Shown piece after piece: positions 842-57,700 of a stretch of DNA of 64,000 nt; the first letter of the stretch is position 1; every line of letters starts with the position of its first letter. A program made the translations under genes and the position numbers. The stretch is from NCBI GenBank assembly GCA_039096225.1, contig JBBPEB010000013.1, positions 992,001 to 1,056,000 of the forward strand. Direction: 5' to 3'. Source of the stretch: Blastocystis sp. Blastoise (Eukaryota > Protista > Bigyra: Opalinata). The notes under the pieces were generated by a model. It was not told the DNA's origin, made no database searches, and saw only the letters and a list, made by a program, of their open reading frames with translations.

Positions 842-1591
842 ATACGCGGGAAAGAAATTCCAAAGTATAATGAAATGTTCTTTTAATGTGATTGAATTAT
901 ATTATGTAACATTTCCTTTTTTACTCTTGGTAGAATTATCTTCTTATGCTATGTTTTCAGTAATATCTGTTTATATTTATGATATGTTTCATAATCTCTC
1001 TATTACTATTGTTGTATATGTATATATATATATATATATGTCAAATGTATGTATGTTGTTAATATGTTTAGCCTTCCTCTTTTTATATTGCTTGTCTATT
1101 TATACTTATAATTCATTATGATATCATCAAGTAAAGTATTTACATTCTTCCACTCTTTCGCATTACTGTTCTATACTTATATCTTCTACTACTCTAGGCA
1201 CTGAGATTTTTCATTTTTCTCAGGAAGAATCAAGTTTTATTATTGTTTATACATATCTTTATCTATGCATTTCGTAATTTGATGTTTTATTTTTTATTTT
1301 TTTATTTTTCTTAATGGTTATAAAAAAGTTTTATTTATAAATAAGTTTTTATAAATTATTTATAAATAATACTCTATATTATTAGTTTTTTGTTCTTTTC
1401 TTATTTATTTAACAATAAACATGTTTTAAAATATTTTCTTTTTTAAATTTGTTTTTTAATAGCAAATATATACATATGAAAGTAATATGAATCATAATAA
1501 TAATTAAAATTAATTATTTAAAGAAAAAAATGATTAAAAAACATGAAATAATAAAAAAAAAGAAAAAAATAATAATTTTTTAAAAGAAGAA

Positions 1592-9703
<8,112 letters not shown>

Positions 9704-13640: not shown

Positions 13641-13662
13641 ATATAAGGTATAGAGCGGTTCA

Positions 13663-13760
13663 CAAGTTGCGACAAAAGTTGCGACAAGTTGCGACAAAAG
13701 TTGCGACAAAGTTGCGACAAGTTGCGACAAAGTTGCGACAAGTTGCGACAAGTTGCGACA
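13663..13760. repeat. Subterminal (A)AGTTGCGACA(A) array at the left end of the hAT element (related units at 16455-16640)
   Basis: About 9 tandem 10-12 bp units with no spacers; typical of hAT transposase-binding arrays. Confidence 0.9.
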
Positions 13761-13858
13761 CATTTTAAACATTATTTTTATAAACAAAACAAATTTTTAA
13801 TAAAGAAAACATAAATAAAGCATATAAAATATAAATTATGAATTAATTAAGAAAAATA

Positions 13859-15940
13859 TTAATCAAGATTGATCTCTGAAACATTACTAAAAGTGGATAA
13901 ATTATCAAAAGAAATTGATAAAATATCATCAAGAGAATCAGATAAAACACTATTTGAATTGAAATTAGAATTAAATTCGTCATTTTCATTTTCATTTGAT
14001 AATATTTCATTATCATCTATGATTGTCATTGAAGAATCATCAATTGTAGTATCTATTTCATCTTCAATAATCATTGAATCATTTTGAATTGAAATAGTAT
14101 CTATTTGTGGATTCATATAGAAAAATAAATCTCTAAACAAATTATCATCAGAATAACCAAATTTCTTCTTTGTAAATAAAATATTCATAAAAGAGAAAGA
14201 TCTTTCTACACTAACAGTAGTAGAAGGTAATTGAAGAATGAAAGGAATTATTTTAGAAATAGAAGGAATTTGTTTAAGAAGAGGAAAATAGAATTTTATC
14301 ATTTGTTCTTTACTTACCATATTTTGAGGAAAACATTCATTTTATTTCTTTTCAATATCTATAAAATCTTTCATTTTTGAAACACATAATAAATAATCTT
14401 TCTTTTCTATATTTGTAAATTCAGATGAAGTGAAAGAAGGAAAAGAAGAAGACATCAAGAAAGGATTAAAATATTTTACTTCATTATAAAATATCATTTG
14501 TTTCTTATTCATTGTTTTGATTTCTTTCAATTTTAATAATGTATTCGTAAAACCTATATAATATATAATAATGAATGAATAATAAAAATTAATAAATATA
14601 CTTTTCTTATATTCTTGAATAAATGAAGAATGAACATTTGATAAATTATTTTCTTCACATATTTCATTCACTATCATAATTATATTATCTTTTGAATTCT
14701 TCAATTCTTCTTCAATTTCATCTATCAAACTAGAAACATTACAACATTGAAAATTATCATTGGATAATAATTTTAATATTTCTTCAAACATTATTCCACT
14801 CTTCAAAAGAATTGACATTTCGATTTGTAAAGAAGAAGATAATTGATTATTTTGAAGAATATTCAATATTTCTTTATCTTTTTCACTTAACATATCCAAT
14901 GTTTCTAAATATTCATAGAATGATTTCAAATATTTAAAATGTTTCAAAATATATCTTAATGATTTATACCAAGATATCCATCGTGTTTCGACATAAGAAA
15001 AGAAAGAAGAAGAAGGAATATTATTTATCTTTAAAAAGGATAACCATAAATCATTTTTCTTTCTAAAGAAACGAAATGATGAATTAATGAGATTAATAAA
15101 TGATTTAGTATTAATAAAACCATCTTTTAGTTTCTCAGCTACTAGATTAATCATATGCATAAAACATCCACAATAAATTCCATCACTAAAAATCGATTCA
15201 TAATTATTACCAGCATTTCGCATAGTATTACAGTTATCTGTGTGAAACGATTTAAATTGTTTTCTTTTAATGTTCCATTCTTCTAATGTATCTTGAATGA
15301 TAGAAAGAAAATTATTTGATTTTTGATTTTCCATTCTTTTCAAGTTTATTAAGTAGAAAGGTTCATTCAAATTGAAAGAATTCAATCTTCTTACGATTAT
15401 TGATAAATAATTAGAACCAGCATCTGAGGTAGAAGAATCACATAGAACAGCAATAGGACATTTTTCTAAACTCATTTTTACATATTGAAGACGTTCATCA
15501 TATAATTGAGGTATAATTCGTTTTTGAATAGTATTATAACAAGATATATTATTATTATTATTCATTTCAAATATATTTTTCAATTTCATTCTAAATTGAG
15601 GTTTCTTGAATTTATTAATAGGAATACATTCTTCTAAGAATAATTCTATTAATTTTTCAAATCTTATATAATTCACATTAGATTCAATAATTCTATTTTT
15701 AATATTAGTTTTCTTTACAGAAGATACAGTAGAAGACTTTTCTTTCATGAATGAATTCATATTAGAGATATGCATATCAGTATTGAGATGTTTATTAATA
15801 GAAGATAATCTTTTATGATCTACAATACAATTACAATAGATACAACGAAGATTATTATTCTTTGATATGAAACATTTCTTTTCTTCTTCATTCATACTGG
15901 ATGATAATTTTATTTTTGTTAAACGACTTATTGGATTCAT
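13859..15940 (-). pseudogene. hAT transposase with CGGBP1-like N-terminal zinc finger; one in-frame TAA
   Basis: C2H2 LRCIYCNCIVDHKRLSSINKHLNTDMH; DDE core VLCDSSTSD, HTDNCNTM, CFMH, ETRWISW, LPSTTVSVERSFS. ORFs 14342-15940 and 13859-14320 share a frame, separated by TAA 14342-14344. Probable 48-nt GT-AG intron 14554-14601. Confidence 0.88.
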
Positions 15941-17749
15941 TTTGTAGATTCTCGTTCTAACATTCTCACTTTTCTTAGTAGATGAAGACTTCTTCTTTTC
16001 TTTTCACTTTATGAGCATTAGATTGTTTCATTGTTTTTTTAACCATATCTAAAGATAATTAAGAATGTTGAATACATATATATACTTCTTTTGATTCTTA
16101 GAATGATATTTTATTGATAGAAATGAGTATTAAAGAAGACTTTATGAATAGATGAATGAATCTATATTGAAAGAACGATTTATATAGAAATATAAATTAA
16201 TGAAAATGAGATGATTTCTTTCAATTATTTATACATTTTAAAATGACTGAAAATTAATAATGTCCCGTGAATATTTCATTTTTTTGACTGTAAAAAAAAT
16301 ATTCATGATTTTTTGAAAAGTATTTTTAATGTTTTTCTTTGTTTGAATTAAGTATTTAAATAATTCTTGATGTTTATTATATTCACCACTATGAATTTCA
16401 TAAATTATCATATTTTATATAAATGTAAAATAGGTCTATATATGTTTAAATGAAAAGTTGTGACAAAGTTGTGACAAATTGCGACACTGAATTCTTTTTT
16501 TTAAACAAGTCTTAATTAGTTGCCAAATTAATAAAATAATCACGGGACTCTCGATATACTCGGGGTAAAAAAAGTTGCGACAAATTGCGACAAGTTGCGA
16601 CAAGTTGTGAAATTTGTCGCAACTCGATTTGTCGCAACTTTTGAACCGCTCTAATAAGGTATCACTTTACTTGAAAAAACATCATTCTTCATAAAATCTA
16701 CAGCATATTCATGACTTATTAGCATTATTTTGGAATTTTTTGTTATATCTAAAATAAAAAGACTACCAAAATTTTAACAACATTTTGTTTATCTTCATAT
16801 CATTCCTATGATACATAATAGTAACCTGATAATTTATTCAATCATTTTTTGAAATATAAAACGCTTTGCTAAAAGCAGAAATTGAATACATAAACAAAAA
16901 TATCATAATATTCATTTCTGTGTACTGAAAAAAAATACTATATTTAAGAAATTTCATTTTCTAACACTATTCTTCTTCTTTTTTTAAGTTTTTTTTTGTG
17001 ATTAAGTGAATTTCATCATACAATAGAAAAATTTAAAAAAATATGAAATTCTGTGAATTTCATATAATTGTTTTCTATTTCTTAATAATCGAAATTGGTT
17101 TGAACAATTTTTAAAATTAAGATTTGTTAATAAAAAACGGTTTCTATATATCTCATCAAATAAATTAATGAAAATAAGTCTATTTTAAAAGTATTTTGTA
17201 AAAAAGAAATGGAAACTATATGTTATTATTATTTTTTTTTTATTAATTTATCAACATGATGTGTTTCTCTTGTTCAGATGAATTTTGTTATTTGAATGAT
17301 AACATTTTTTATAATTTAACTAATATCGTGTTGTAACACATTTTTTTTTTAATAAAGATTGTTTTCTCAATTTTTTGGGTAACTTAATTTACTCGTAGTT
17401 TGTTTATAGTGAATTATTGAAAATATTTAAACTCTAGGAAGGTAGACTCTATTATTATGGGACGTAATTTTCCATATATAGTTATTTGACTGTTTATAAA
17501 TAAAATAGGTGCTGATATTGTTATTTTTAACTGAAAAGCGGATGATAAATTTAGAAATCAGTAATAGAAATATACTTTATCAAAATAACGCAATACCTTT
17601 ATTTTATGTGATTTGTATTTATATTAATTATTATACGTAGAAACTTATGATAAACTCTTTGATAATTTAAGATTTCTATTCTAAAAACGTTGTAGGATTT
17701 TTTAAAACAATTATTACTTATGTATTCTATCTTCTTAATTATGTATAAA

Positions 17750-18931
17750 TAGAGCAGTTCAAAAGTTGTGACAACTCGAGTTGCGACAATTTTCACAATT
17801 TTGTCGCAACTTTTTTAACCAATGAATATATCGAGAGTACCGCGATTATTTTATTAATTTGGCAACTAAAAAAGACTTGTTTAAACAAAGAATTCAGTGT
17901 CGCAATTTGTCACAACTTTGTCGCAACTTTTCATTTAAACATTTATTTAATTAATATTTTATATAATAGAATATTTCATTATAAGAATTAAGTAGTGATG
18001 AATATATATACCAAATTTCATTTTATAAAAATGAAAAGATCATATGAAATGAATTAAAGAAAGAATTCAAAATATTTTGAATAATTTTTTTCCAGTCAAA
18101 AATTTGATTTATTTACGGGATAAAACCATTTTTGACTCATTTTTGAAATTCATTTTTTTTAATGACAATTCAAATGAATTTCATTTTTATTTTCTATTAA
18201 TTATTTAATTATATTCAATTAAAATTATTATGTTTATCATGCATAGTATTTAATAATGTGAATGATTTCATTAATACATTGATTTTAAGCCATTTTGAAC
18301 TGAATTTATTTTTATCAGCTCGTCTTGTCATCTAATTAAGAATAATATATTTATAATTGATTCTTAATTATCATATAGATACATATTTACATCATAATAA
18401 TTCATTATATCATGTTTAATGAAGAATGTTAAAAATTGAATTTTGATGAAATGAAATTATTTGAATATATATGTTATCAATAGCTCATTATTAGCTCATT
18501 ATGAAGAAATGAATCATTTTAAAATATTTTTATACTTAATGAGTTCATTTTGTCTTCAATGAAGCTTTTATGACATTCAATTTTTCACTTTTTATATTTA
18601 ATAACATTATTTTGATAATATAAAAATAATATAATATTTTAAAAATCGTTAAAAGAATAAAAGAATGATTAAAATAAGTATATTTATCTAATGAATTTTT
18701 CTTATGAATTTCAAAAATTTCATTTTTTTAGTGTTTAAAACGCTTATTAAGGTTATTAAACTTATTATTAATTTATTTAAAAATTATTTATGTAATCATC
18801 ATGAAAATATCTTTATAATTATATGTTTAAATATATTATATAATAAATATATGACTTACAAATGAGATATAAAAAGTGTCACAACTGTCTTAACTTGTCT
18901 TAACTTTTGTCGCAACTTTTGAACCGCTCTA
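17750..18931 (+). mobile_element. Non-autonomous derivative of the same hAT family, opposite orientation to the 3-kb element
   Basis: Starts TAGAGCAGTTCAAAAGTTGTGACAA, with ~200-400 bp similar to the rc of 16260-16653; ends TTGTCGCAACTTTTGAACCGCTCTA; no coding capacity; flanks TGTATAAA/TCTATGAC are not a TSD. Confidence 0.85.
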
Positions 18932-19342
18932 TCTATGACATTCAATTTTTCACTTTTTATATTTAATAGCACTATTCTTATAATATAAAAATAATATAAT
19001 ATTTTAAAAATCGTTAAAAGATTGTTAAAATGATTAAAATAACGATATTTATAGAATAAATTTGACTTTAAAAATTCAATTTTTAGTGTTTAAAACGCTT
19101 ATTAAGAGTATTAAACTCATTTTTAATTTATTTAAAAATTATTTATGTAATCATCATGTAAATCTCTCTATAATTATATATATAAATTTATAAAATAATA
19201 AATATATGGCTTACAAATGAGATATAAAAAGTGTCACAACTTTGTCGCAACTTGTCACAACTTTGTCGCAACTTGTCGCAACTTTTTCGCAACTTTTGTC
19301 GCAACTTGTCGCAACTTTTGTCGCAACTTTTGAACCGCTCTA
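18932..19342 (+). mobile_element. Second, diverged right end of the non-autonomous hAT element
   Basis: Similar to 18567-18931; has a larger TTGTCGCAAC array (19230-19330) and a TIR ending at 19342. Confidence 0.85.
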
Positions 19343-20531
19343 AATATGATAAGAAAAGAGCGAAAAGACAATTTTTTTTCCTATTCTTAAACAAATATCA
19401 TATATTTATTTTAACTCTTTATTTCTTCAATTACCTTCTACTACTGTTAATGTTGAAAGATCTTTCATTTAAAAATTTTTTATATAAAAAGAATTTTTTA
19501 ATAACGAAATTTTATTTAGACAATTATCGTTTTGTAGAAATCACGAAATAGTTTCTATATCAATTTAAAAATAATTCGATTAGTGCTGAAGATGAATACA
19601 AAAACAATTGATGATTTATCTAACAACTACTGTAAATGGTGATGAATAAATATCGAATATGAAACTAGTATGTATAAGTCATTTTTCATTATTATTAATG
19701 AGTTTTAAAATTGAAATAATTTTTTCATTATTGTCCCAATTTTTTCCTTAAGAACTTAAGAACGTCTGTATTTTTTATGTGATTTTTTCACGATATTTAA
19801 AAAGCTTTTTATTGCAATTTTTAAACCATTAGTAGTGATTTTAAGATTAATCTTGATTTATTGTATTTAATATTCAATTAGTATTTTGTTTTGTATGTTT
19901 TTTATATGTTATATTTTAGTAATGTACATTTTGATTTTAAGAATAATATGAAAGGACTTATCGAATGTTGTCATAAATAATAAAAAATATCTAAAAAAAA
20001 TACAGAAAACAAAATATATAAATTGTACATAACTGGTTGCCCATCTTTTTGACAATCACAATTAATTCTTAAAACAAACACATCATAAAAAAACAATAAT
20101 TTTCTTTTTTACAACTTATAATCTACATTAACAAGTAAAGTTAAAAAACTTAAATCTATTTTTGTCTAAAAATTGATTACAATTGTTTTATATTGATTAT
20201 TCATTCCAATAGTCCATTTTTCTTGGTTCAATATTCATCATAAATATTAAGTTTCACATTTGCTTTTTTGCATTTATTTGGTCGTTAGCGTTTTGTTCTC
20301 ACTAATTTTTTAGTAAGTTTTATGGCAATCTTTGCAAATATCACAAAATGTTAGAATCTTTTGTATATGACAGCTCTATCAAATGATTAGAGGTGCTATT
20401 TTTATAAAAATCATCTCGTTTTGTTAGTTCATAAACATTATCTATGTTTTTTTTTTCAACAAAAAAAAAAAACATTTAAGCAAATAGAACAATAAATATG
20501 TTTTTTATGTAGTATAAGTGATGTTTAAAAC

Positions 20532-20746
20532 TAGAGCGGTTCAAAAGTTGCGACAAAAGTTGCGACAAAAGTTGTGACAAAGTTGTGACAAATTACAACA
20601 CTCAATTCATTTTTAAACACATATTATTTAATAGTCAATTTAATAAAATAATCGCGATACTCTCGATATATTTATTGGTTAAAAAAATTGTGACAAATTG
20701 TGAAAATTGTCGCAACTCGAATTGTCGCAACTTTTGAACTGCTCTA
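20532..20746. mobile_element. 215-bp MITE of the same hAT family
   Basis: TIRs TAGAGCGGTTCAAAAGTTGCGACAA / TTGTCGCAACTTTTGAACTGCTCTA; perfect 8-bp TSD TTTAAAAC (20524-20531, 20747-20754). Confidence 0.95.
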
Positions 20747-20875
20747 TTTAAAACAAAACAAGATTTACAATTATTAAAATTAATAAGATTCAAAATATAA
20801 AAGAAATAACTAGAGATACAAAATAAAATTATAAGAACAAATTCTAATTAGTGGTGGTTAATAATTAGAGTTTAT

Positions 20876-23790: not shown

Positions 23791-25446
23791 ACTAATTAGA
23801 AAAGAAACAAGAAAAACGCAATTAAAAAAAATCTAAATATTTTTTTAAGAATGAAAATGATGACAATTCATTGTTTTTAAGCAAGCGGTTCGTTCCTTTT
23901 TTTATTAAGAAAAATGTATTGATTTTTTCTCTTTTTGAAAAAGGACCACTTTTATTTGGTCGACAAAGGTTCTCGTTATTATTGGATAATTTTTAACCTT
24001 CCAATCAAATGGACAAGATTAGTATTTATTCTCTATGTTTTCATGATTCTATTGATATACAGAAATCCACTCATTTTTCAAGGTCTCATTTTCATCCTTT
24101 TTTTGAGTCTTTTAAAAAACGACTTTTTTAGACTCTTTGACAACATATACACATTATAAAACAATTAAAACAGCTGTACCTAAGGGTATGTTGTTATCTT
24201 TGAAACAATAAATCAAATAATTCTTGTAGAGTACATTTAATTAGTATAAATGATAGTATTAAAAAACTAATGACACAAAACGACATACGACATTAAATAG
24301 ACAAATTCAACTTCTGAATCGAAGCATATAAAACGAATTCACATTGAAAAGACAGTTATATAGTGAATTAATAGTTGTTTTAAATATAATTAAAGTAATA
24401 AAATGCATGTATAGCATAGGAATGATATATAGAAATGGATGAATGCCTTAACTAACGTTTATCATCATTTTGTTTGTGTTGATCCTAACTCTAATTAGTA
24501 AAAATGTAAAGATTTGAGTGTATGTGTTTATTTAATATTGTATTGAGTTGTGATTGTGTATTTACTTTTGATAAAATGGTTATTTAGTAAACAGATATCT
24601 TGTGAGAATCGGTCTTATAGAACTCATAATAATGAAGAACAGCCTCTCTGAACGATATACATTAATAATTTATGTAATATATAAAAAAGAATGACCATCT
24701 TATGCTAAAAAATAATATGAGAAAAGAAAAAGAGGGGTTTTATTTTTTTTATATTTTAATATTTTCATGGTTACAGATGTTCTCTAATGTATGAACATGC
24801 ATTACAAAGTATATGGATTGATTCCTCACGTTTATACTGTTGTTGAACCACAATAAAATTATAAATGATCCCGAATCTTAATACTAATTTTCTTATAATC
24901 AACAGAATGCTATGCTTATCTAAGTCTAAAGCATTTATATGTATAAATCTGAGTTATTTTTGTATAAATACTTTTTTATAGGTCTACCAAGGAAATCATT
25001 GATTGCGTTGAGAAGAAACAAATGCAAATACAGTTGAAATGAATAGGATAGATACATAGTAGAGATACATGAGTGTTCTACTATTCGTTCTTTTAATTCT
25101 AATATGGACTCTTAAGAATAATTCCTGAATCTGTTTGAAAAAGGTAGTTTTTATGTGTAATATAATATATCTTGTGTATATATATGCATTATTGAATATA
25201 TATAATATATATATAGTAATATAAAGCTAATTTATTAATGACAAAAACTATTTCTTTTCTTCTTTATGTTTATGTTTTAAATATTTCTTCGTTTAGCTAA
25301 TGTCATGAAGTTGTTTTGATCCCTTTCTATCAATTCTTTAATCTTAATAGTCATAATGATGAAACATCTATTGAAATTCCTTAAAGTATAATTTAAATAA
25401 TAAAAAATGTATAAAGTGATTATTATATAAATATTTTTTTTTCAGA

Positions 25447-26442
25447 ATATTAGTTCGTTAGAAAGCCTTTTACATTTGATAATTAATGAGAGAAGTACTT
25501 TCTTAATAATTACTGACATGCATATGTTATCTTCATATTCAAAAAAAAGTATTTGAGAAACTTTCTGGAAAGCTATCTATATGAATTGAGTACTCAGCCT
25601 GGAAATAAAGTTCAAGATGGATTATATTATTACTTGGACTCTATGAATCAGTATATTTATTTGGTATTCTCTTCAATAAAAGGTGAACAGTTGTTGATGA
25701 CAGATATTTCTTTGAAAGATGAAAAAGTTGTTTGTGAAGCATTTGATTTTTGTGGAATTCCTGTTTCCTTACAAGTTAAGAATCATTTCAAGCATTTATG
25801 TGATTTAGAGAGAAATAAACTTGAAGATCATGGTGCTGTTGTTCGTTTAGCAGATTCTGTGAATAATCTCAAATCATCTTTATCATTACTTGAAGAGAAT
25901 AATAAGTCAATAAAAAGTTCTATTTCATCGTTAGAAGATCATCTAAAGCTTGTTTCAAGTAGTTTAGGTGAAATAGATACTACATTGGATTTATTGAAAG
26001 GAAAGATTTCTTATATAGAATATGAGTCTCTTCTTACAGAGAAAGAGTCTTTAACTAGTTCTAAGAAGTGTGAAATATGGAAACAATTGAGTGATGATCC
26101 TATTTTCCATTCAAATAAGATCCTCTATTTATTTCAACCTGATTCTACTATACTAACATATATGGATAGAGTTTTCTTCTTTATGCTCTTTAAAGATTGT
26201 TGTCAATGGCAATTATTATATCGGTATATTATTACTATTCATTCTCTCTCTACTATTATTATTATATACTAGAATGAGTGATCATGAAGGTAGTGTGAAA
26301 TGTTTCAAGGAGAAATGTTGGGAGAAGGAGAGTTTAGTATTTGTGAAGGCATTAGATGATGATAATAATATCGTTACCTTTGGAGGATATACAGCTACAG
26401 GATGGGGTAAGAACCTTATTGACAGAGATAATCCTCCTAGAC
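25447..26442 (+). pseudogene. BTB-like / coiled-coil / TLDc-domain gene, TLDc truncated
   Basis: After intron 26223-26272: WQLLYRMSDHEGSVKCFKEKCWEKESLVFVKAL..TFGGYTATGW, the first half of TLDc. The second half is absent, replaced by the TFIIIC duplicate. Apparent frameshift at A8 25541-25548. Confidence 0.7.
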
Positions 26443-26599: not shown

Positions 26600-29330
26600 T
26601 AATATTTATTATTATAATATCATAGTTTTATTCTAATACTCGTCTTCATGCTATTCCCGTTGTTTTAACGAACAAACAATTTCAATATCGACCATTACGA
26701 ACGGTATAGATTTATTATTCTGATTATATATCTATATATTAATAAATATAGTTACATATTGGATGGAGTTCATTATCTGAATCTGTATCTCTATCTATTG
26801 AACAATGTAAAACATTATTCCTCTTACTATTTCGTCATCCTAAAGGATTAGCATCTACTCTATTTACTCTTAATATTAATTTACTCTGTATATAAAGATA
26901 ATATTTATCTATTTTATTTAATATATATATATATAGCTCCATTATATGATTATATATTCCCTGAATATTTACATCCTGCGTCTCTTCCTACACCTTATCC
27001 AGCTATATACCCACTTATCTATACAATCCTAACTATATTCTTCTTACATCAAGAATCATGTTATACAAATATAAAGAAAGAATTATTTTCTATTTTAACT
27101 AATGTATATAATAATTAGATTATATTATAATATATGATATTAATAATTATATAGTGTTTTAAAGAAGAAGATATACAAAATGTATTTTATAAATATATAT
27201 GTGAACATGCAATTTTTGGAGAAGGAAAACCAGTTTATTATTCTTACTATTTACAAAATGTATTTATTAATGTTTTCTTGATAATTAAAATTGAATATAT
27301 TAATAATATATAGAAGAATGATACACTTCCTATATATCCGCTTTCTTTATCTCAATACCTTGCTATTGGTAGTAAATCAAAAGAAATTTATATTCAAAAT
27401 AAAGTATTTTATTTTATATGTAATAAATATATTAATATATATTAATATATATTAATATATATATAAATATATATATATAGAATTTCCCATATTATTCTAT
27501 AAACAATCGTATATCTCAATTAGAAACAGATTTAGCTTCTTATATTCATTCAATAGCCAGTGGAGAATATCGAATTCTATATAAAGATCCATTATCATTA
27601 TTAAAGATTAATAATATAAGTTTATCAAATGATATAAATATTCAATCTAATGATAATAATATAATAGCAGATACATCAATAATAGAAACTATGAATATGA
27701 ATAATATTGAGAGAGATGAGAATATAGATACTGATATAGATATAGACACAGATACCGATATAGATATAGATATAGATACCGATATAGATATAGATAAAGA
27801 ATTATTTACTATATCAAATTCAAAAGAAGATGAAGATGAAGAAGAAGAAGAAGAAGAAGAAGAAGAAGAGAAAGTAGAGAATAAGCGATGTAATCGATAT
27901 ATAGATAATAGTAAAGATATTTATGTAGTACGAAATATGAGTCAATTCTTAGAAAATGAAGGAAATAGTCGACAATTATGTATATATAAAGAAGAGAAAG
28001 ATATATATAAAAATAAAAATGAATATTGGTGTATATTAGATCCTATTCATTATGTATATATATATATATATAATTGATTTAAAAAAATAATATATTATTT
28101 TATAGAATAAGCCAGATATTGATGAAGATATTACATTATATAATTATATTGATCAATATAAATTATATATATGTATAAATAATATTATAGACTCTAGTGG
28201 TATGGATGGTATTAAGATATCTGATATATATGACAGCGTATCTGCATATATAGAACATCATTCGATTTCTCCTTATATTCCACAAGATATAGTATCTTTC
28301 CATCGAGCTATCTCCACAGCTATATTAGATCTAGAAAATCAATCCCAAATTTATAAAGTGAATGATTATAAGTGTCATAAATATATATCTAAGAATTATT
28401 TGAAATATTATATTCTTCCTGATTTAACTTCATTCTCAGTTTCAACAGATTCAGTTTCTTCTCTTTCTCCTCAAACATCTGAATCTACAAAAGATATAAT
28501 ATCTGAAAAAGAAATGAATAAGACACCAATCTTCTTACATACTCATTTTATACACTTAAAGAAAGGAGAAGAACAATATGGACAATATAATTCTTATACT
28601 CAAATATTATATGTTATTATTAACTCTCCTGGAATTACTATTGTAATTATTTATTTTTTTTTATTTATTATTTATTATTTTATTTATTTATTTATTAATT
28701 ATTAATTATTAATTGTTTCATTCATTATTATATTTATTATTATATTTATTATTAATAATTTTATTATGAATAAATTAATATTTTATATAATATATATATA
28801 TATTTTCAATAGACAAAATTACATTCAATTTTTCCAACTTATCTTCCTATTGAATTATTTGATATATGTTTACATCTAAGAGATCAAGAACTGATTGGAA
28901 TCAAACAATTCTATGTATATTATATTTATTATTATATTTATTATTTATAGAAATCTTCAAAAGCATCTCTATTTTCTTCTCCTTCTATTCTAATTAAAGA
29001 TACTATTCTTTCTGATTTTATTAATAAGTATACTTATATTTATTATTCTATATCATATTTATATATATAGAAGTCCTGATACAATTGAAAATACAGAATA
29101 TTGTTTCTATCCATCAAATAATACTTTCGATCAACTATCTACATATATATTCAATCATAAAGAATATATCGATGGAATCAATATTAACTCTAAATAATTC
29201 TTCTTTTAAAAAATTATTATTTTTTTCTTTTTTTTTATTATTTCATGTTTTTTAATCATTTTTTTCTTTAAATAATTAATTTTAATTATTATTATGATTC
29301 ATATTACTTTCATATGTATATATTTGCTAT
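26600..29330 (+). pseudogene. Inverted partial duplicate of the TFIIIC gene 3' half, lacking two introns
   Basis: Starts inside an intron, first exon at 26626, stop 29195-29197, ends about 133 nt into the 3' flank. Precise exon-exon joins at 28199/28200 and 28365/28366; two synonymous SNPs noticed (26658, 26703). Confidence 0.92.
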
Positions 29331-30133
29331 ATAATTATAGTGATTTAATAAAAACAATGATTGACTTATAACTGTTACATGTATATTAAACTTGATTCTC
29401 AACAAAACACAAAATATGCATTTAAGATATCTTTATAATTCTTAATACAAGTGAATAATATATATATATATAGTATAGAAATACATATAACACAAGAAAC
29501 TATAAAGAGAAGGAAGGATGACACAAATAAATAGACAAAAAAATGTTTGCGAGATGATATTCCATACAAAACACAAATAAAATAAGAAGAAAAAATAAGA
29601 TGTGGAGAGTATATAAAGAAAATATAAATAATAAAAAGGAAAGATAAATAAAAATTAAAAAAGAGAGAAAGAGAAATGAATTAGAGAATATAATATAAAA
29701 TTAGTAGAATAGATTCAAAAGGAAAATTAAAAAAAAAAATTATTGAATAAAAGAAACTAAAAATAAAAAAGTCAAGTGAATAATGATTTATAAAAGTATA
29801 AAAAAAAAATAAGAAGATAAAGAAGGTATAAATATGAGTATATATAAATATGAAATATGTGTTCAAATTTAGTAAATAAAAAAAAAATCAAATAGATAGA
29901 AGAGAAAAAATATCATATAGTAATATATATATTTACAAATAATGTGAATAGAGAAGAGGAGCTAAAAGAAAAGAACAAAAAAAAAAAGAAAGAATAATAA
30001 TATATAAAAGGAAAAAAAGTTCAAATAGAATAGTATTTATAGCAGTATATAAAAATAGTATATATAATAGTATATATAATAGTGTAAAATAGAGAAGCTA
30101 GAAGATCTTTATATATATATATAATAATTCGAT

Positions 30134-30408
30134 TTAGAATACTCTAACCTTGATAATAGGATTAACAAAAGTAACATTATCTATATATATATATATAAGT
30201 ATATATATATGTATATACCAAAATAGGATCTTGTGTTAATAGTCTTCCAATTGAGTTTATTTTCTGTTTGTAGCGTATTATATTTATTGACACAGAGGCC
30301 ATTCGTGACAGCAACTGAAGTGACTGTAGAATTGAGAAGCGGATTCATACCGTGAATGGTACTTACTATATATATATATATAGAAGGAGAAAATACATAA
30401 ATAAAAAA

Positions 30409-30453
<45 letters not shown>

Positions 30454-31626
30454 CCCGTAGTAGAGACATCAATAACTTGAATATTCTTATAAAAGCAATA
30501 CGATGTTAATAGACGTTCAACGTACGGTTCTCCGTACGCGATGGGACACAATTCCGATAAATCAGCATTTTTAGAGAAGATGAAGAAATCCTATATATAT
30601 ATATATATATATATACAATAGAAGATAAAAGGAAAATAGAAAATAAATATATAAGCATATATAAATACAAAAGTGAATGAATTATCTTCATTGTCCTCCG
30701 TACAAAGATTGGATACATGAAGATCGTAATCGAATTGTGTTATATAATTCATTTGAATTTGATTGGTTGGTACTAAATGACGATGTCCAACTAACATATT
30801 CTTTCTAAGTATTCTTTCTTTGGACATAGAATTCTTAATAGTAAGAAGAGTATGTATAAGAGTAGAAGATTGAAAAGTCTCTGGAGATAATATACCATAA
30901 TATACAGAAGACCATTTAGACTTCATATCTTCTAAGAGAGATGTTACTAAAGGATAACCAAGGGAATTCGTCCTTTAATATAAATATATTATATATAATG
31001 AATACAATAATAATAATATATATATATATACTTAAAATGATTAACAACTGTAAATTGTTTGAATTCCGGTTTAAAGAAAGCTCCTTCAATCTTCGTATAG
31101 ATAACTATCTTAATATTATATTGTTGCTGAATATAACTGATAGAAGCATAAACTTTAGTTCGAATCTGATTCACCAACGCATCCTGTTTATTTATAAATA
31201 ATATTTATATTTAAATAAGAAAAAACATATATATATACATTGTTTTTCATAACTGGAATTCCATATACTAGAAAATAATCACTCTTGTCAACATCTAATT
31301 GTAAATATATAATAAAATAATAACAAAAATAATAAAAATACCTTGAAGATGTCTTAAATTGTTTAAAGACTCAGTTGTATTCTTTCTCATAATATCGTTG
31401 ATGCTCATCATATCACCTGAATCTTCAGATTTATCTATATCTATATATTAAAGATAAATGATGTAGAAAATGATTTCTATTGTAGTCTGATAAGGAATAT
31501 AACTTATTTCTTGTGATCCAAGAAACAAGCATATATTACACATAAAAAATATATACTGATTGCATTAGTTATTGGACTACACAACATGAAGATTATTAGT
31601 GATAGAATGCATAATCTTCTTTTCAT
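30134..31626 (-). CDS. Signal-anchored glycosyltransferase-like protein (divergent GT-A-type family), multi-exon
   Basis: Hydrophobic N-terminus MKRRLCILSLIIFMLCSPITNA; motifs TNSLGYPLVTSLL..YYG..MLVGHR..DFFIFSK..IDVSTTVSTIH; all joins GT-AG and in frame. Function is inferred. Confidence 0.55.
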
Positions 31627-32085
31627 ACTCATATTAAAGTAGAGAGAAGTATTCATTAGAATCTATAACTCTTATATGAATATATAGGTAATAATTTGAA
31701 TAAAGTAATGAAAAACACTTAACTCGTTTAAAAATTTTCTGTCGAAATCAAACCTTCTTTATCGAACTGAATTTCAAAAATATTTTTTTTGGGGTTCACT
31801 GAGTTCCTGTCGGTACTTTAGGGAATAATTTTTTCCAGATTCTTTATGAATGAACTTGTTAGTTGCAGAGTTGTGTATAATTTTATATTGTGATATGCAT
31901 TCATAAGTATATGATCATGAGTTGTGAAATAGAAATGAGTATTAATAAATTATTTTTTTAGAAATTACAAAGAAATTCTGCTTTATTAAATGAATATATA
32001 TAACAAAGCTATCATCAGAAGGATAAGGAATTTGAATAAACGTCAAGTCATAGATAAATTTAAAAGAATATGTTTTTGTCAGTTG

Positions 32086-32533
32086 TTATTGATTATAGGT
32101 TCTCCTATGAGATGAATTAGAGTGATATTTTTTATATTTATACTTGATTTGATTTGATTTTGGAGGACACATCTATAGAAGAGCATATAAATATGATAAT
32201 AATAATAATAATAGAGATATATAAAAGAATTGTTGATTCATATACTTCTTTGCATCGAACGCATGTGCATTCTAAATGATCCGACTAGATATATATATAA
32301 TAGTAAAGGATAAATAAATGAATAAATGAATTGAAATACAAAAGAGATAGGATAAGAGAAAGGGTATTTGAGTGAATAATAGCGATTATTTTGAGAGAAT
32401 AAGTCATTAGATTCCTGTAGTGTGTTATTAAACATAGAAACACAAGGAAGAGATTGAATTAGAGTGCAGAGGGAATGCATATAGTTATACATATAAGAAG
32501 AAGTACAACATATGGTAATACTATAGAAAATAA

Positions 32534-32567
<34 letters not shown>

Positions 32568-33443
32568 TTGTTTCATGTTATGAATAATAGCAGGGATGTC
32601 TTGTTGATGTGTATTAATATAGGACATAGTGTCTATTATACTCTCATTTATCTATATGAATATATATAGGGATATTAAAGGTATATAAAAATATATAAAA
32701 GTACATATATATATACATACTAATGGTATATAATGAATATAGGGTTTGAGTAGAGGTGTTATCCATGTATGAACTTCTGGAGACTATATATATATATATA
32801 GTATTGATACTAGATAGTAATATATAGAGTATAAATAGTATATATATAGTTATAATAGGAGAATAGAGAATAGGTTATACCATGATGAGGAGTGTATTCG
32901 TGATGGCATATAAAGAGAGATAACAGGAAGAAGGTGGACCAGGAAGCACTCTAGAAGAAGACACATAGATAAAGAGATAGATAAAGAGATTATATATATA
33001 TATATATACAAGGCGTATTTACATTGAGAGAGAGTCTTACTAAAAGAATATATAGAGAATATATATATAGCAGAAAATATATATATATATAATGAATAAT
33101 ATACATGATATTTGGATAGTCCCCTTTTCTATAAAATAATATATATAGTAATATTTAATAGGAACAAGTATATATATATACTTGTTTTTCAATAAGGGAA
33201 TAGACACTTTTTCATCAAGTAAATAATACTGAAATTTATATGTTTTTGGATTATCAGGATTTGATGTAACTTCGAATGCGTCAATTCCATCAGTATATTT
33301 CATATCAAGAGAACTATATAAATAATAATAATAATAATAATATATTTATATATAGAATAAATCATACAGTTCTTCTTTCATTGTTAATAAATCTTGGTAT
33401 ATAGTTTTAATTCCACTATTATCTATAGAAGTAATTATAAGAG

Positions 33444-33513
<70 letters not shown>

Positions 33514-34436
33514 GATAGATCTCCTCTCCAAAAGAGACAATTGGATCGTTGATCGAAGGAGTGTGCGTCACTATCTTGTGATACACGTATAGCCTCATAG
33601 ACCGAAGAGAGAAATAGAGATCGTGCTAGAGATGGTGTGATAAGATAGTAATAATAATAATAATAAACATAACAAACATAATAAACATAATAAACATAAT
33701 AGTATATACATGGCATGAAGGATGGTTGGAAGGTCAGTATATAGTCCATATACAGAGGGAGAGGGAGATCTGTGAAAGGAGAGGATGTGTAAGATCCAAG
33801 AATAGGGAGATATACACTATATATATATAGAGTATATGAAGAAAATTGAAAGATATATATAAGAATAAAATGAGAAAGAGATTTAAAAATAAAGAATTAC
33901 AGAAAAGGATCTATAAAGAAATAACGTTTATATATATATACGAGAATGATGGTTGTTTCTGGAAGGAGGGAAGAGAGCATTCCGATTGTAGAGTAGTGTT
34001 ATATATTAATGGGAATTGGAAGGAATTGAGAATCAGAGAGATCGAGAGGGAAATCTAGTCATAATAATAAGTATATATATTATAATGAATATTATTATTA
34101 TTATTCATATACATTATGATTGAGTAAATAATTATAAAAACCTTCAAATAGATTCTCATAATAACAATAGTCAATGTATCCATCAAACTATATATATATA
34201 TATGATAAAGTGACTGTTTATCAAATGAATAATGAACAGGAAATAGAAAAAACAAAGAGACATAGAAAAACGAAACATAATATACATAAAGAAATAAATA
34301 TATATATGTATATATACTTGATAAGATTCATGCATATAGATATAATTCCCGTTATAAACCCACTTGTCAGCTGGAAGTATGGAATAAATACATTGCAAAG
34401 GAGCCTATTAATGTATATAGAAGAGAAGATGAATAA

Positions 34437-34516
<80 letters not shown>

Positions 34517-35066
34517 TATCAAATTTCCTTTTATAAGAAGTGTATAATTGAATATTATTAAATTTAAGTTGTTCTCCCCAATTATTAGAAAAATCGCTGT
34601 TCGAGAATGGTTGATAATACATGCCTTTCTTGTTACTTGTGTTTATTGAAACAATCACACCTTTTTTATATGTATCATAGACATAAGATACACTCTATAA
34701 ATATAATATTTTTGTAAAAAGGAGTATACATTCAGAAAAGAATCACAAAAAGCACCACTTTCTTGGAGTCTCACATCACTACTTAGTTGAGTAGATAAAT
34801 CTAAATATATATATCGATAATTCTTTTAAAAAATATACATTTGAATTGTGTTTCCAACAATGGTTTTAAATCAGAGTCGACAAAAGATAAGTAATCAGGT
34901 ACAGAGAGTGATTGTCTATTCGTTTCCTTAGAGGAAAGAATGAAATCACAATAACTATTGACTAATTTATTCCAATCATTCTTAATATTATCGTTTACTT
35001 GCAATTCTCGTGGTTCCCTATATTCGTATATTTAAAATAAAGATATATATTGTAACATAGATACAT
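32086..35066 (-). CDS. Protein with C-terminal CAP10/GT90 (Rumi/KDELC-like) domain, divergent, many exons
   Basis: Spliced FDQRSNCLFWRG, LSQCKYALVLPG, WITPLLKPYIHYIPL..IIDTMSYINTH match GT90 motifs (W..K...FWRG; CKYKYL..G; L.PWVHY.PV). 5' end uncertain. Confidence 0.6.
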
Positions 35067-35905
35067 TTTTAGAGTAACTTAAAATGTTGATGTGAAATGT
35101 TTTTCCCGTAAAAAAATGCAAATTATACTTCTCAATTCTCATTTATTTATGATTATAAATAAAATGAATTATTATCTCATATTTCCATGTATATTGTTAC
35201 CATATCTTTGTGTCGACTAGTATAGTTGTGATAGAAAAGGATTAATTCATTTAGAAAGACTCCATGTTCTTGTAACACTTCAGTAGGAAATGTTCGATAT
35301 TTCACTTTTAGAGTTTTTATAGATATTTATAAAGATGAATATATAGAACGAACAACATATCCTAGTGATATAAGTCTAAAAAAAGAGAATTCTTCTATTT
35401 TTCATGCTTAAATGAAGCAAAATCAAGTATTTATCATACTTATTTATCTTGTCTTTAAAATCTTTGTCATTATATATGTTATTTATAAGGTATCTCAGAT
35501 AGACGAGACTGAACAAAATAAGAAGACTATTTCATATTCATTTACGAATTTGTTGTTTTTTAAGATTTCTTTTCTAAGTTCGTTTCATCTAGAATACCAT
35601 TTCAAACACTTTTAACAACCTTATATAAATAACATATTTAAACTAACCAATTATGACAAAAAAATACTAAACTTTTATGTCTTCTTAATTCTAAACACTT
35701 TGCATTTTATTGATGTATATAAAGTCTTTAAAAAGCTAGTATTTAAAGAAAATGATCAAAAAAGAGTCACTGAAAAATTTAAGAAAATCATGGTTTTCAA
35801 GATATCTTCAAATAGGGACTTGAAGTCCGTCATTAACTAAGATGGTTTTCATTTTTCTTTTTAGTCATTATTTATTTAAAAATTCATTTTAGATAAGAAT
35901 ACATT

Positions 35906-38015
35906 ATGAATAATAATAATTACGAGATTGCGTATGAAAATGCGGTTAGATATTTGTCTGATTTTACACTCAACCAAGTATAGAATCAATGTGTGATGTT
36001 TAATATATACGTATATAGAGATACCATCTAGTTGAACAGCTCAATGCTGCAATGCTAACAAATCTGATAAGAGTTGCCCAAGTATTTCAAGGTATATTAT
36101 CTAATACAATTACATTTCTATTTTTTATATCAAGATAACATCAACAATGATATGATACATATGTTCTTTGATATGTACATTCAAGGATATGACCCTGATG
36201 CAGTCAGCATAGAAATGATAATGTCTAAAAGCTCATATCCTGACACAGCTCCTTCTATTCGATTAATGCCACATGGTATTTTTTATGATTATTCTATGTT
36301 ATTTATCAAGTTCAAATTATTATTATTTAGCATCATACTTACTGAATCTTCAATATTATTGGATTAATTCTATTGGCGTTTTAGGAGAGTCTATTATGGA
36401 AACATTTAATCCTGTATATATATATATATATATCCTAGCATATTATAAAAACAAAAATTCTTATAGAATTTAAACATTTCGCAAATCCAAGGATTTATTG
36501 AAGATCTTATAAAGAAGTTCAATCTTTATTTGTATATATATCATTATATATATATACGTCTTACTAGTTGTTAACTATTTCCCAATATATTTAGAAAAGG
36601 TATATACTTATAACTCTTTTTTTTGCAGTAGTATTTATATACATGTAATATATATAGTAAATCTTCTTAATGGTGATTATTTTACCCCCAGAATCGTGGA
36701 TCCACTTAATTATGGTCCAGATAATGAACATAATCCTAACTTTCTGGGAAATGGAAAGTATGGCACTTGCTTTAAATCGTATGCATATATAGAGTAATGT
36801 ATACTAAATAATAATGTAATTATAATATAACCATGTTATGCTTTGTTATTACTATAGTAATTATAACAATAATCCTGTTTGTATAAAACAAATTAAAAAG
36901 GATAAGGGTGATTCACGAAAGTATATAAGTCGTGAAGTGGAAGCAATGACATTATTAAATAGAGGAAATAATAAAGGAATTCTTCAGGTATATATATTAC
37001 TATGTTATATATAACTATATATATATATAGTTATACGGAATAATTGAACATAAAGACAACATCCTGCTAGTTACACAATTAGCACCAAATGGAAATCTTG
37101 ATAAATATATGAAGAATACCACAAAGTATATATATATATATTCACATATTCATATCTTTGTATATAGAGATGTACGAAAAGATACAACATTATTCTGTGA
37201 TATATTTAAACAAATTGCCAGTGCTGTAGCTTTTATTCATGAAAACCATGTTTATCATAGAGATATTAAAGTATTATATATATATATATTATATATATAA
37301 CTTTATGATTGTTATTATAGCCTGATAATATTCTTATGGATGAAAATGATAATCCTGTTTTGGGAGATTTTGGATTGTCACGTGTTGTAAATGAAACAGT
37401 TGCTCCTAATGATATTACTCATTGCGGTACATACCCCTTGTATATAAATATATATTTTATTATTTTTATATTCTTCTTTCTTCAATATATTTTTAATTAT
37501 TATTGTTTGTTAGTATTCTTTGCATTCTTATGTGTATTATATATATAGTGCTGCTCCAGAATTGTTTATTGACCATAATGTTATTACCGATAAATGTGAT
37601 ATATACTCATTAGGTTTAGTTGGCTATTATATTATGACTAAATGTGATTTAGCAAAAAAATTATTTGGTGATGAGGCAAAAGTATATAGATCTATATAAT
37701 AATGTTATCATTGTTTATTATATATATATATATATAGTGTAGAACTAATAAAACAAATCCATCTTATGAAGTTCAAATAAATAGTTTTCTGAATCCAAGT
37801 ATTCATCTGATTCTATATATTATCGAACTATATTAATATATTATTATTCTTAATTCTATTTATGATACTTATATTATATATCTATATCTATAGTATTATA
37901 TAACTTATTCCAGAAATGTTTATCTTTTAATCCTGAAGAAAGACCTTCTGCGGCTGAAGTTGTTAAAGAATTAGACGAATATAATGGACCTCTATATAAA
38001 AATTCTATTGACTAA
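35906..38015 (+). CDS. Ser/Thr protein kinase with an N-terminal extension (possible RWD/UBC-like fold)
   Basis: LGNGKYG, VCIK, REVE, HRDIKPDNIL, DFG, GT..FAAPE, DIYSLG and RPSA all present after splicing. Confidence 0.92.
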
Positions 38016-54733: not shown

Positions 54734-57700
54734 TTAAACTCTAACTTTCTTATTATTTTCACTTCCCTTCTTAATACTACTATGTTCTTTCAGTTTATTA
54801 CTACCAGCTTTTCTTGAAGATTTTTTGGTTCTAAAGACAATGCAAGCAACAATGAATACAACAGCAAAAGCAGCAAGAATAGCTAAGATAACAATAACAG
54901 TAATAACAACAGCACCAAGAGAAGTAGATTTGACGACACTAGGAGTTTGAACTAAAACAACTTCAGTTGTATCAGGGAAAATATTTTTATTTAAAGCTTT
55001 TAAGTTATTAGCAATAGTAAGAGCATTAGCATTAAGAGATAAAGCAGTTGTATCAGCACTACCATTATCAGAAGTTACTCTTAAATAACATTGAGCAGCA
55101 GAAACACTTCCTGAAGAAGCATCAGTATATAAGAAAGTTTCAACATTTGAAGAAGAAATACCTAATAAAGTAGATAATACAGTCTTAAGAACAATATCAC
55201 CACCATTATTCATACCTTCTAAAGTAACAGCATTAATCTTAATAATAGTATCAATATAAGCTTTTCCACCAGGAGGACTATTAGCTTTACAATTAGTCAT
55301 ATCAACAGCATTCCAAGAAGGAGTAATAAGAGCATCAGAACAATGTCTACTTTGAAGACCAAAATAATCACTAGGACAATTAGCAGTAACTGTAGTACCA
55401 CTTTGAGCAGTAGGGAAACTACCTTCAGGGAAACAATAAGTAATATGACAAGAGAAGAATTTAATTTCAGATAATTGAGTACGAGAAGCACCACCTTGAG
55501 TAGCAGTAATTTCTAATTTAAAAGTATTATAAGCTTTAGTAGATGAAGTTAACCACCATTCTCTCATTTGTTTACGTTCACTCCAAATAGATAATTGATT
55601 TACTTCTAATAAAGTATCCCAAGTAATCTTATCATTACTACCCTTTAAAGTAAATATACGAGGATCACGTTCAGAATAATCATTACCAGAATATAATTGT
55701 ATCTTATTAATAAAATCTCTTCTATCAAAATTAAATTCTAATTGAGCATAAGCAGGTAAACCATCTTCTAACCATTTAGTATCTGTAGAATCATCAAAAG
55801 CATAATCAACAGATTCAAAAGGCATATTATAAGAACCACTATTTGTAAGTGAATATCCATTAATTCTATTAATACAAGTACCTTGTAAAAGAGTAGCATA
55901 TAAATCAAAATCAAAACTTGTAGTAGAAACATCCTTTCTATGAATTTCAACACAAATATAATTAACACCATTCTTTAATTGATGAGAACCAGCAGAAGTA
56001 CGTCTATATATATAAGCATCATATTTAGCAGTAGCAAGAGTACCAGCATTTACATCACCACTAGCCATATTCATTCTATAAATTTCTTGTCCATTAACAT
56101 ATACAATACAACCTTCAACAAAATATAAAGAAATATCAATAAGAGGATATTTAGTAATATCATCAATAGAGAATGATTGTCTTAAATAAATAGCATTAGA
56201 TACAAAGTTAGGATAAGAACCTTTCTTACCAGTAGACCAACTTCCATCATTAAAATCAGTAGAAGTCCAACCGTTAATAAAAGCAGTACTTACTTTCCAA
56301 GTACTTTCTTTATGTATACTACTTTCAACATTAATAGTAACACTATAAGGAGAAGTCTCAACAACAGGAGCAGTCCATTTTCCTAATAAATTACCATTTT
56401 CTTCATATAAAGCTACATAACTATTAGGAGCCCAACCATCATTATATTGATCAAAAAGATTTAATTCAAAGTTACCATAACTAAGACAAATAGCATAGAA
56501 TCTCTTTTCTTTATCATTTCTAGTACTACCAGTAAATATAGTTTCACCATTTTGAGTAATAGTAAATGTTTCTTGAACATTACCAATATCAGCAACTCTT
56601 TCTATTTTAATTAAAGTCTTACTATCACCACAAGAAATAACATTAACAGAAAAAGAAGCAGGAGAAGAAATACCTCCAGGACCAGTAACAGTAACTTGAT
56701 AATTAAATGTACCATAAGCAGGCCAATAACCATCAATTTGACCTTTATATACATTGAAAACAGCAGTTGAAGGAAGAGCAGGACTAAAAGTAGCTGTCTT
56801 ATAACCTCCAGTAATAGTGAATTTTATAGGATCTACATCTTGTAATCTGTAAGCAGTTCTCGTAGTAGTAGGTCCAGTAATAGTAGGCATACCAAAAGTA
56901 GTTGTAAATATATTTTCATAAACAGCAGGAGAAGCAGTAGAACCACCAGCAACAGTCTTTGTTAAAACAACAGTTAAATCATCTCTATAAAAAGCATAAG
57001 AACAACCTTCAGTAGAAGTACATTCAAAAATATGAGTTAATGTAGCACTAGGATTAAAACAATGTCTATATTCACCAATACTACCAGATTGAGAAGTACC
57101 TACAGTAGCACCTTCTTTGATTTTTATATTACCTGTACCTTTAAGAATTTGAGTATACCAATATCTATCATTATTACAACCATTTACTTTAAGAGTAACA
57201 GTAGTAGTTGCACAACCACCTTGATTACAAGCTTTAAGAGTAAACATAGTAGCTACATTAAGAGCTTCTTGAGGAGTACCTTTAAACCAACCAGAATAAC
57301 TTTCAATATAAATACCACGAGGAGGTTCAGGAGTACAACTCCAAGTATCAATACGACCATTATAATAAGGTCTAAATTCGAAATAAACACCTATAGTAGG
57401 TTCAAAAACAGAAGGAATATCAGCATTATTATATTTATATGTGAAACCATTAGGAGCTTCAAGATAATCGACTTGTAATTCAAAACTGCCTTTATAAGAT
57501 CCATTCATTATAGTATAAGTTTTATAAGCAGTGTCAGCAGTAGCTGTACCAAGAATAGCACCACTAGAAGCATCAAGACTAAGACCAGCAGGAAGAGCAG
57601 GAGAAGAAGGATCTAATGAATAACTACCAGAGGCTGTAGCACCTAACCAAACAGGAGTATTACTAATAATAGGCATACCTCTAAAAGCAATATATTTCTT

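Follow-up and report, generated by a model that had tools for sequence, protein, structure and literature searches.

How can two adjacent introns disappear to the base from one copy of a gene segment that keeps the introns on either side of them? The question is raised by positions 26600..29330 (+) of the window, the 64,000-nucleotide stretch of the Blastocystis sp. Blastoise genome analysed here, where a young duplicate of the 3' third of a TFIIIC subunit 1 gene lies. Blastocystis sp. Rus-B/Blastoise is a tortoise-gut protist with a published genome of 33.3 Mb and 23.1% GC (PMC10690189), and the assembly that we searched comprises 33.34 Mb in 34 contigs with about 23% GC. The mechanism of spliceosomal intron loss is a long-standing question, with retrotransposon cDNA, RNA-templated repair and end joining as the candidates, and it is still open because the events are rare and old. 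Across dozens of apparent losses between copies that differ by just 0.1–5%, tract ends, donor SNPs and splice-site context are still readable, and in a culturable organism the models become testable.

The focal copy and its source gene

The focal copy aligns to source positions 4335..1459 (-) in three ungapped blocks, separated by gaps of 58 and 88 nt. The first gap is exactly the GT..AG intron at 2735-2678, leaving an exon-exon junction at 28199..28200 (+), and the second is exactly the GT..AG intron at 2511-2424, leaving a junction at 28365..28366 (+). The former intron is also missing from the copy on C23, while the latter is present in the source and in the copies on C23, C19 and C7. They are introns 7 and 8 of the span, adjacent to each other. 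The preliminary description had reported the absence of precisely these two introns, no other net indel, two synonymous SNPs and neither poly(A) nor target-site duplication (TSD), and the alignment agrees with it throughout: the lengths balance (2877-146=2731), the only mismatches in 2731 nt are A>C at source 4277 (Pro/Pro) and A>G at 4232 (Thr/Thr), and no poly(A) run or TSD was detected at either end of the copy. Its count of ten retained introns stands for nine complete introns; what was taken for a tenth is intron 4393-4310, which lies upstream and contributes just its terminal 26 nt. The intron-less state described is that of the assembled sequence.

In our local gene model, the source span holds 11 complete introns and a frame of 663 codons that is open to the stop at 1594-1592. 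Both missing introns have lengths of 3n+1, and the frame remains single and open once both are removed; their ends are thus real splice sites. A random deletion of 30–110 nt in the span would match a true intron with a chance of about 1e-4. The splice sites of the 58-nt intron are spanned by a 5-nt direct repeat, the only one among the 11 introns, and such a repeat is absent from the 88-nt intron. The losses in the focal copy are internal, with the three 3'-most introns retained, and the copy ends 133 nt past the stop codon, immediately ahead of a short A-run in the source.

The source gene (1592..9703, -) was modelled with about 36 introns and a product of about 2000 aa, a length that is approximate because the model was read through an (ATT)n run of about 800 nt at 6222-7031, probably an expanded intron. 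Every intron found in any copy is present in this gene, and its part at 4336-6200 is single-copy. Upstream exons were scanned one by one against profiles, and separate exons matched WH_GTF3C1_N (E=0.0018) and B-block_TFIIIC (E=0.0051), both below the curated cut-offs. Given that the N-terminal winged helix is followed by the B-block match in the correct order, the profile evidence identifies the gene as TFIIIC subunit 1 (GTF3C1/Tfc3-like).

Origin of the duplicate and of its sibling copies

The two flanks of the focal copy belong to different duplicated blocks. To the left lies the 5' part of a TLDc-domain gene (25000..26442, +, start approximate) in a block also found on C33 and C2, and to the right lies a block also found on C5. 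At the left junction (26600..26616, +), 17 nt are common to the TLDc-gene intron, in its C33 version, and source intron 4393-4310, an identity expected by chance about 2e-4 times per junction pair. The TLDc gene is fused to the duplicate via the resulting hybrid intron, and the fusion is out of frame because a phase-1 donor meets a phase-0 acceptor, with a stop within a few codons in the fusion transcript. An in-frame TLDc-TFIIIC fusion was considered and ruled out using the donor of the annotated paralogue, which gives an out-of-frame join. The focal copy is therefore probably dead cargo, and its intron loss probably neutral. The right junction (29331..29420, +) is a switch to the C5-homologous block across about 25 poorly matched nt. 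Where the C5 right-flank homology begins, C5:825774-825720 holds a 55-nt, 85%-identical relic of the last exon of the source, which suggests an older duplication of the same TFIIIC 3' end. No empty site, with both flanks joined and the copy missing, was found in the genome assembly.

The most plausible reading is that the copy was duplicated as DNA, by template switch, and lost introns later; an inserted semi-processed cDNA fits it less well. As the anatomy of the locus shows, the first step would have been DNA duplication by template switch at AT-rich intronic microhomology, which would have joined the TLDc gene to the 3' third of TFIIIC subunit 1 with all 11 introns initially in place. It resembles the gap-filling template-switch duplications of Pack-TIR elements in its intronic microhomology at the breakpoint, nearby source and chimeric transcript (PMC8277862), but differs in that no transposon ends directly bound the focal copy and that introns were lost afterwards. 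Carriage by a Helitron was rejected, Helitron-like ends being seen only as an insertion inside an intron of the C7 copy, and uncollapsed alleles were rejected because the copies sit in different contexts on five contigs. Elsewhere in the window, 13651-20750 is occupied by a transposon that has arrays of subterminal repeats and a frame of 553 aa (14345-16003); it lies at the left end of the C33-shared block and may have mobilised that block.

Three further copies of source 4329..~2050 are found on C23, C19 and C7 in a common cassette, both ends of which fall inside introns. The C7 copy keeps all eight shared introns, one of them containing a 3-kb Helitron-like insertion; the C23 copy lacks only the 58-nt intron; and the C19 copy lacks three other, mutually adjacent introns (48, 49 and 51 nt). 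No intron differences were detected in the remainder of the C19/C23 cassette. Of the five copies, the majority carry any given variable intron, and so does the sister of the copy without it, so the variable introns are losses after duplication. By this parsimony, the second step would have been intron loss that occurred separately in different copies. At site 2640, the focal copy carries the source allele and the C23 copy the allele of its own clade, and the 58-nt intron would most simply have been lost twice, once in each. Given its 5-nt splice-site repeat, the single loss in C23 may have arisen by end joining. SNP patterns at window positions 4277, 4319 and 3647 and their equivalents fit no single tree of the five copies, which points to ectopic conversion between them, to hidden heterozygosity or to cross-talk during polishing.

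Several insertions and a second chimera accompany these copies. The Helitron-like element at C7:78229-81267 is about 3 kb long and non-coding, with 5' TT, 3' CTTG and a subterminal hairpin, and is inserted between A and T with no TSD; others lie at C7:71407-77396 and C23:48000-50477. Three copies occur within 10 kb on C7, one of them inside an intron that is missing from the focal copy. At C23:56929-57434, a MITE-like insertion of 505 nt is bounded by long terminal inverted repeats and flanked by TA; the C19 paralogue does not have it. Another chimeric gene, of independent origin (C23:66000-68560, C19:672950-675631 and C7:83150-85790) joins an exon of another gene, out of frame, to source intron 4393-4310 at an (ATT)n run. 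This intron has hence served as a breakpoint twice.

Intron loss in neighbouring duplicates

Intron loss in young duplicates appears, from the sequences compared, to be a genome-wide pattern and not an oddity of a single locus. In a survey of other young duplicates, using neighbouring blocks chosen as flanks of the focal copy and not for their introns, we found 15 further precise intron differences in these blocks and their paralogues, some of them reciprocal, at 2–10% divergence. In the TLDc gene, a 49-nt intron (26224-26272) is precisely absent from the C2 paralogue; a protein search with the C2 frame across the lost intron matched only the NCBI-annotated Blastoise paralogue on C33. A neighbouring gene of about 1000 aa, here called gene X (30098..35304, -), has a C5 paralogue at 1.7% nucleotide divergence (pS 0.024) that is without six introns, at 34838, 34729 and 34514 (adjacent), 33709, 32565 and 30218. 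In return, the window copy is without two introns that C5 keeps, of 38 nt each, at about 33261 and about 30801. A protein-kinase gene (35930..38015, +) has paralogues on C5 and C15: intron 36276-36330 is missing in the former, and 6 of 12 introns, in runs of four and then two, are missing in the latter. The block shared by the window and C33 shows no intron differences. Removal is exact to the splice sites in the copies compared, apart from the last intron-less junction of the C15 kinase paralogue, which has diverged and is 3 nt shorter. The C5 block comprises intergenic DNA and two divergently oriented genes with losses in both directions, and one retro-insertion is excluded for it because the losses are reciprocal across a two-gene block.

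In all, 21 introns are missing, counted over four genes that lie within a single stretch of 37 kb and over the paralogues of these genes. Adjacent pairs of lost introns number nine against 4.5 expected (P=0.004; P=0.012 when the focal copy is omitted and P=0.06 in the non-focal genes alone). The lost introns are shorter than the others (median 46 vs 61 nt, P=0.0006), and most, including all lost source and gene X introns checked except the 58-nt one, have a splice-site repeat of 0–1 nt.

The 15 differences, divided by the summed product of introns and divergence (about 2.6), give about six losses per intron per substitution per site, which is to be read as an order of magnitude only, with denominators estimated for loss-free blocks and total divergence understating dS. 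In Cryptococcus, intron loss was put at 5.2e-3 x dS, with 49 changes among 33,473 introns (PMC2395259), so the rate in Blastoise is apparently about 1000 times higher. Such a rate is hard to reconcile with the roughly six introns per kb of coding sequence that the genome still carries; a recent burst, confinement to duplicates and compensating gain are candidate ways out. Housekeeping genes gave a mixed control. Both RPL3 genes have only a 5' intron left, and eIF6 and an acyl-CoA synthetase gene have introns. By open-frame length only, genes of EF-1A and EF-2 size (C25:890354, C8:1731802 and C8:298521) lie in single long open frames, unlike other translation GTPases, which are split into exons.

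Reverse transcription and its alternatives

The cause of the missing introns is in our view recombination with reverse-transcribed spliced RNA, most likely R2-type cDNA, to which we assign a probability of roughly 60%. Both adjacent introns would have been removed from the focal copy in one event. In it, the copy would have recombined, along 166 to 537 nt of mRNA sequence, with a cDNA of spliced RNA that stemmed either from the fusion transcript or from the source gene, identical in sequence. Of the two routes offered in the preliminary description, this corresponds to cDNA conversion after DNA duplication, which is favoured by the 17-nt junction, the lack of an empty site, the intron patterns of the siblings and the reciprocal losses in the neighbouring blocks. 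Points against it are the very high implied rate, the internal position of the losses in the focal copy, and the P=0.06 for adjacency when non-focal genes are taken by themselves.

Elements encoding reverse transcriptase (RT) were looked for and found. A profile search of the genome for RVT_1 gave 20 matches above the cut-off; the open frames that hold them are about 760–2800 aa long, and ten of the matches have identical scores. One element examined has an intact YADD motif, a zinc knuckle and the RH..PD motifs of a restriction-like endonuclease (RLE) in one ORF, and among solved proteins it is matched best by an R2 protein (E=5e-38). Six copies of the R2/RLE-type element are 96–99% identical, and by this measure its age matches that of the duplicates. 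R2/RLE-type retrotransposons of more than 2600 aa occur at C23:70074-77999 and on C10, C13, C14 and C29; several stand in head-to-tail arrays at a spacing of about 8.6 kb, and one is 4 kb from the C23 copy. In the last and weakest step of the proposed mechanism, these young elements would have made the cDNA, which presumes that an R2-type RT copies host mRNA. As a tentative extension, for which we would offer slightly less than even odds, the whole Blastoise genome may be going through a burst in which introns are lost precisely on RNA templates, several times faster than point substitutions arise and about three orders of magnitude above Cryptococcus, in step with a burst of R2-type retrotransposons.

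The preliminary description named polishing with RNA-seq reads as a serious rival, and it deserves that place: spliced reads used in short-read polishing could have removed certain introns from certain copies. The tools behind this nanopore assembly were Flye, racon, Polypolish with Illumina DNA and one POLCA 'short-read' round, and the wording of these methods is ambiguous. Under BWA-MEM default scoring, 18 of the 20 lost introns are short enough for gap-bridging, and such an artefact would also predict the shortness of the lost introns. Multi-intron tracts below about 420 nt (the Illumina fragment size), the RPL3, EF-1A-sized and EF-2-sized genes nearly or wholly free of introns in their open frames, and the extremeness of the rate point the same way. 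Yet around both introns the copy has the same sequence as the source, so that reads would be shared equally between them, and the change is confined to the copy. Two introns nearer the poly(A) end, of 36 and 43 nt and thus easier to bridge, persist in both copies, while the harder one of 88 nt has gone. Of 16 introns in the 5' part of the source that is unique, 11 are easily bridgeable and still there, as are three in the acyl-CoA synthetase gene. Moreover, Polypolish used DNA reads, and the published annotation relies on abundant introns with RNA support, which the assembly has kept. Weakened by these points, the artefact is unlikely, if far from negligible. Were it real, a public assembly would contain corrupted gene structures, which is relevant to its users.

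Another unlikely explanation, rated like the artefact, is that a host polymerase (Pol zeta-like) repairs double-strand breaks with the spliced transcript itself as template, so that cDNA from a retrotransposon is not involved; introns rich in (TA)n and (ATT)n may break often. In human cells, such repair yields precise, consecutive and internal whole-intron deletions without 3' bias (PMC12065846). It would account for the short internal tracts, and the own-clade allele of the C23 copy, 37 nt from the junction, fits a template in cis. Precise and sometimes consecutive deletions in a transcribed locus are common to both systems, but the human events are rare, somatic and retrotransposon-independent (PMC12065846), and those in Blastoise are apparently frequent and fixed in the assembly. 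Rarity in the systems that demonstrate it counts against this repair, and abundant young RTs offer the more standard route. Sequence alone cannot separate this repair from cDNA recombination.

A single insertion of cDNA from a partly spliced pre-mRNA, the other route in the preliminary description, is very improbable. Like semi-processed retrocopies, the focal copy is 5'-truncated and has kept some introns and lost others, RTs are present, and its end ahead of the A-run of the source is a possible 3' end. In contrast to them, it has no poly(A), TSD or empty site, its left junction is an intron-intron microhomology, 9 of its 11 introns are kept, it has a sibling with all introns, and the siblings and neighbouring multi-gene blocks, with their reciprocal differences, show loss after DNA duplication. 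The label 'semi-processed' is accordingly wrong for a copy that arose as DNA and whose introns went later. We give equally little credit to DNA-only deletion, by microhomology-mediated end joining at splice sites or by narrow DNA conversion between copies. The one intron lost twice (window and C23) is the 58-nt intron with the 5-nt repeat, and the conflicting SNP patterns point to exchange among copies, but a repeat of just 0–1 nt was seen at the splice sites of the 88-nt intron and of nearly every other lost intron that was checked, and three or four adjacent precise losses would be unexpected; only the single loss in C23 could be explained in this way. Least credible of all is intron gain by Introner-like insertion in the intron-bearing copies: the eight differences in gene X and most of those in the kinase gene are unpolarised, but the five-copy matrix and the TLDc trio polarise change as loss, and the variable introns are no more alike than the constant ones and form no sequence family.

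Recombination with reverse-transcribed RNA is a known process, the RT model of mRNA-mediated intron loss (PMC3652778); Blastoise differs in how young the copies are and in how fast introns are apparently lost. As in that model, removal is precise, adjacent introns are lost together and a retroelement RT is available (PMC3652778), but here the differences are between copies within one genome, at 0.07–10% divergence. The internal tract of the focal copy has a parallel in Cryptococcus, where internal loss is the rule (PMC2395259). In rice segmental duplicates, 49 losses were reported in 35 gene pairs, from 3,101 collinear pairs, with loss far exceeding gain in duplicated genes, as in Blastoise, and no 3' preference (PMC1779517); in contrast, the 21 missing introns in Blastoise come from just four genes in one 37-kb neighbourhood and their paralogues. 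Our literature search did not find a paper on intron loss among Blastocystis duplicates. If the reading is true, Blastoise would offer, in culture, the chance to count and polarise intron losses and perhaps to watch them happen, with a bearing on the streamlining of Blastocystis genomes, and confirmation in raw DNA reads would mean intron loss caught in the act. At 54737-59308 (-), the window also holds an intron-free frame of 1524 aa for a large protein of surface type, whereas the rest of that region is dense in introns.
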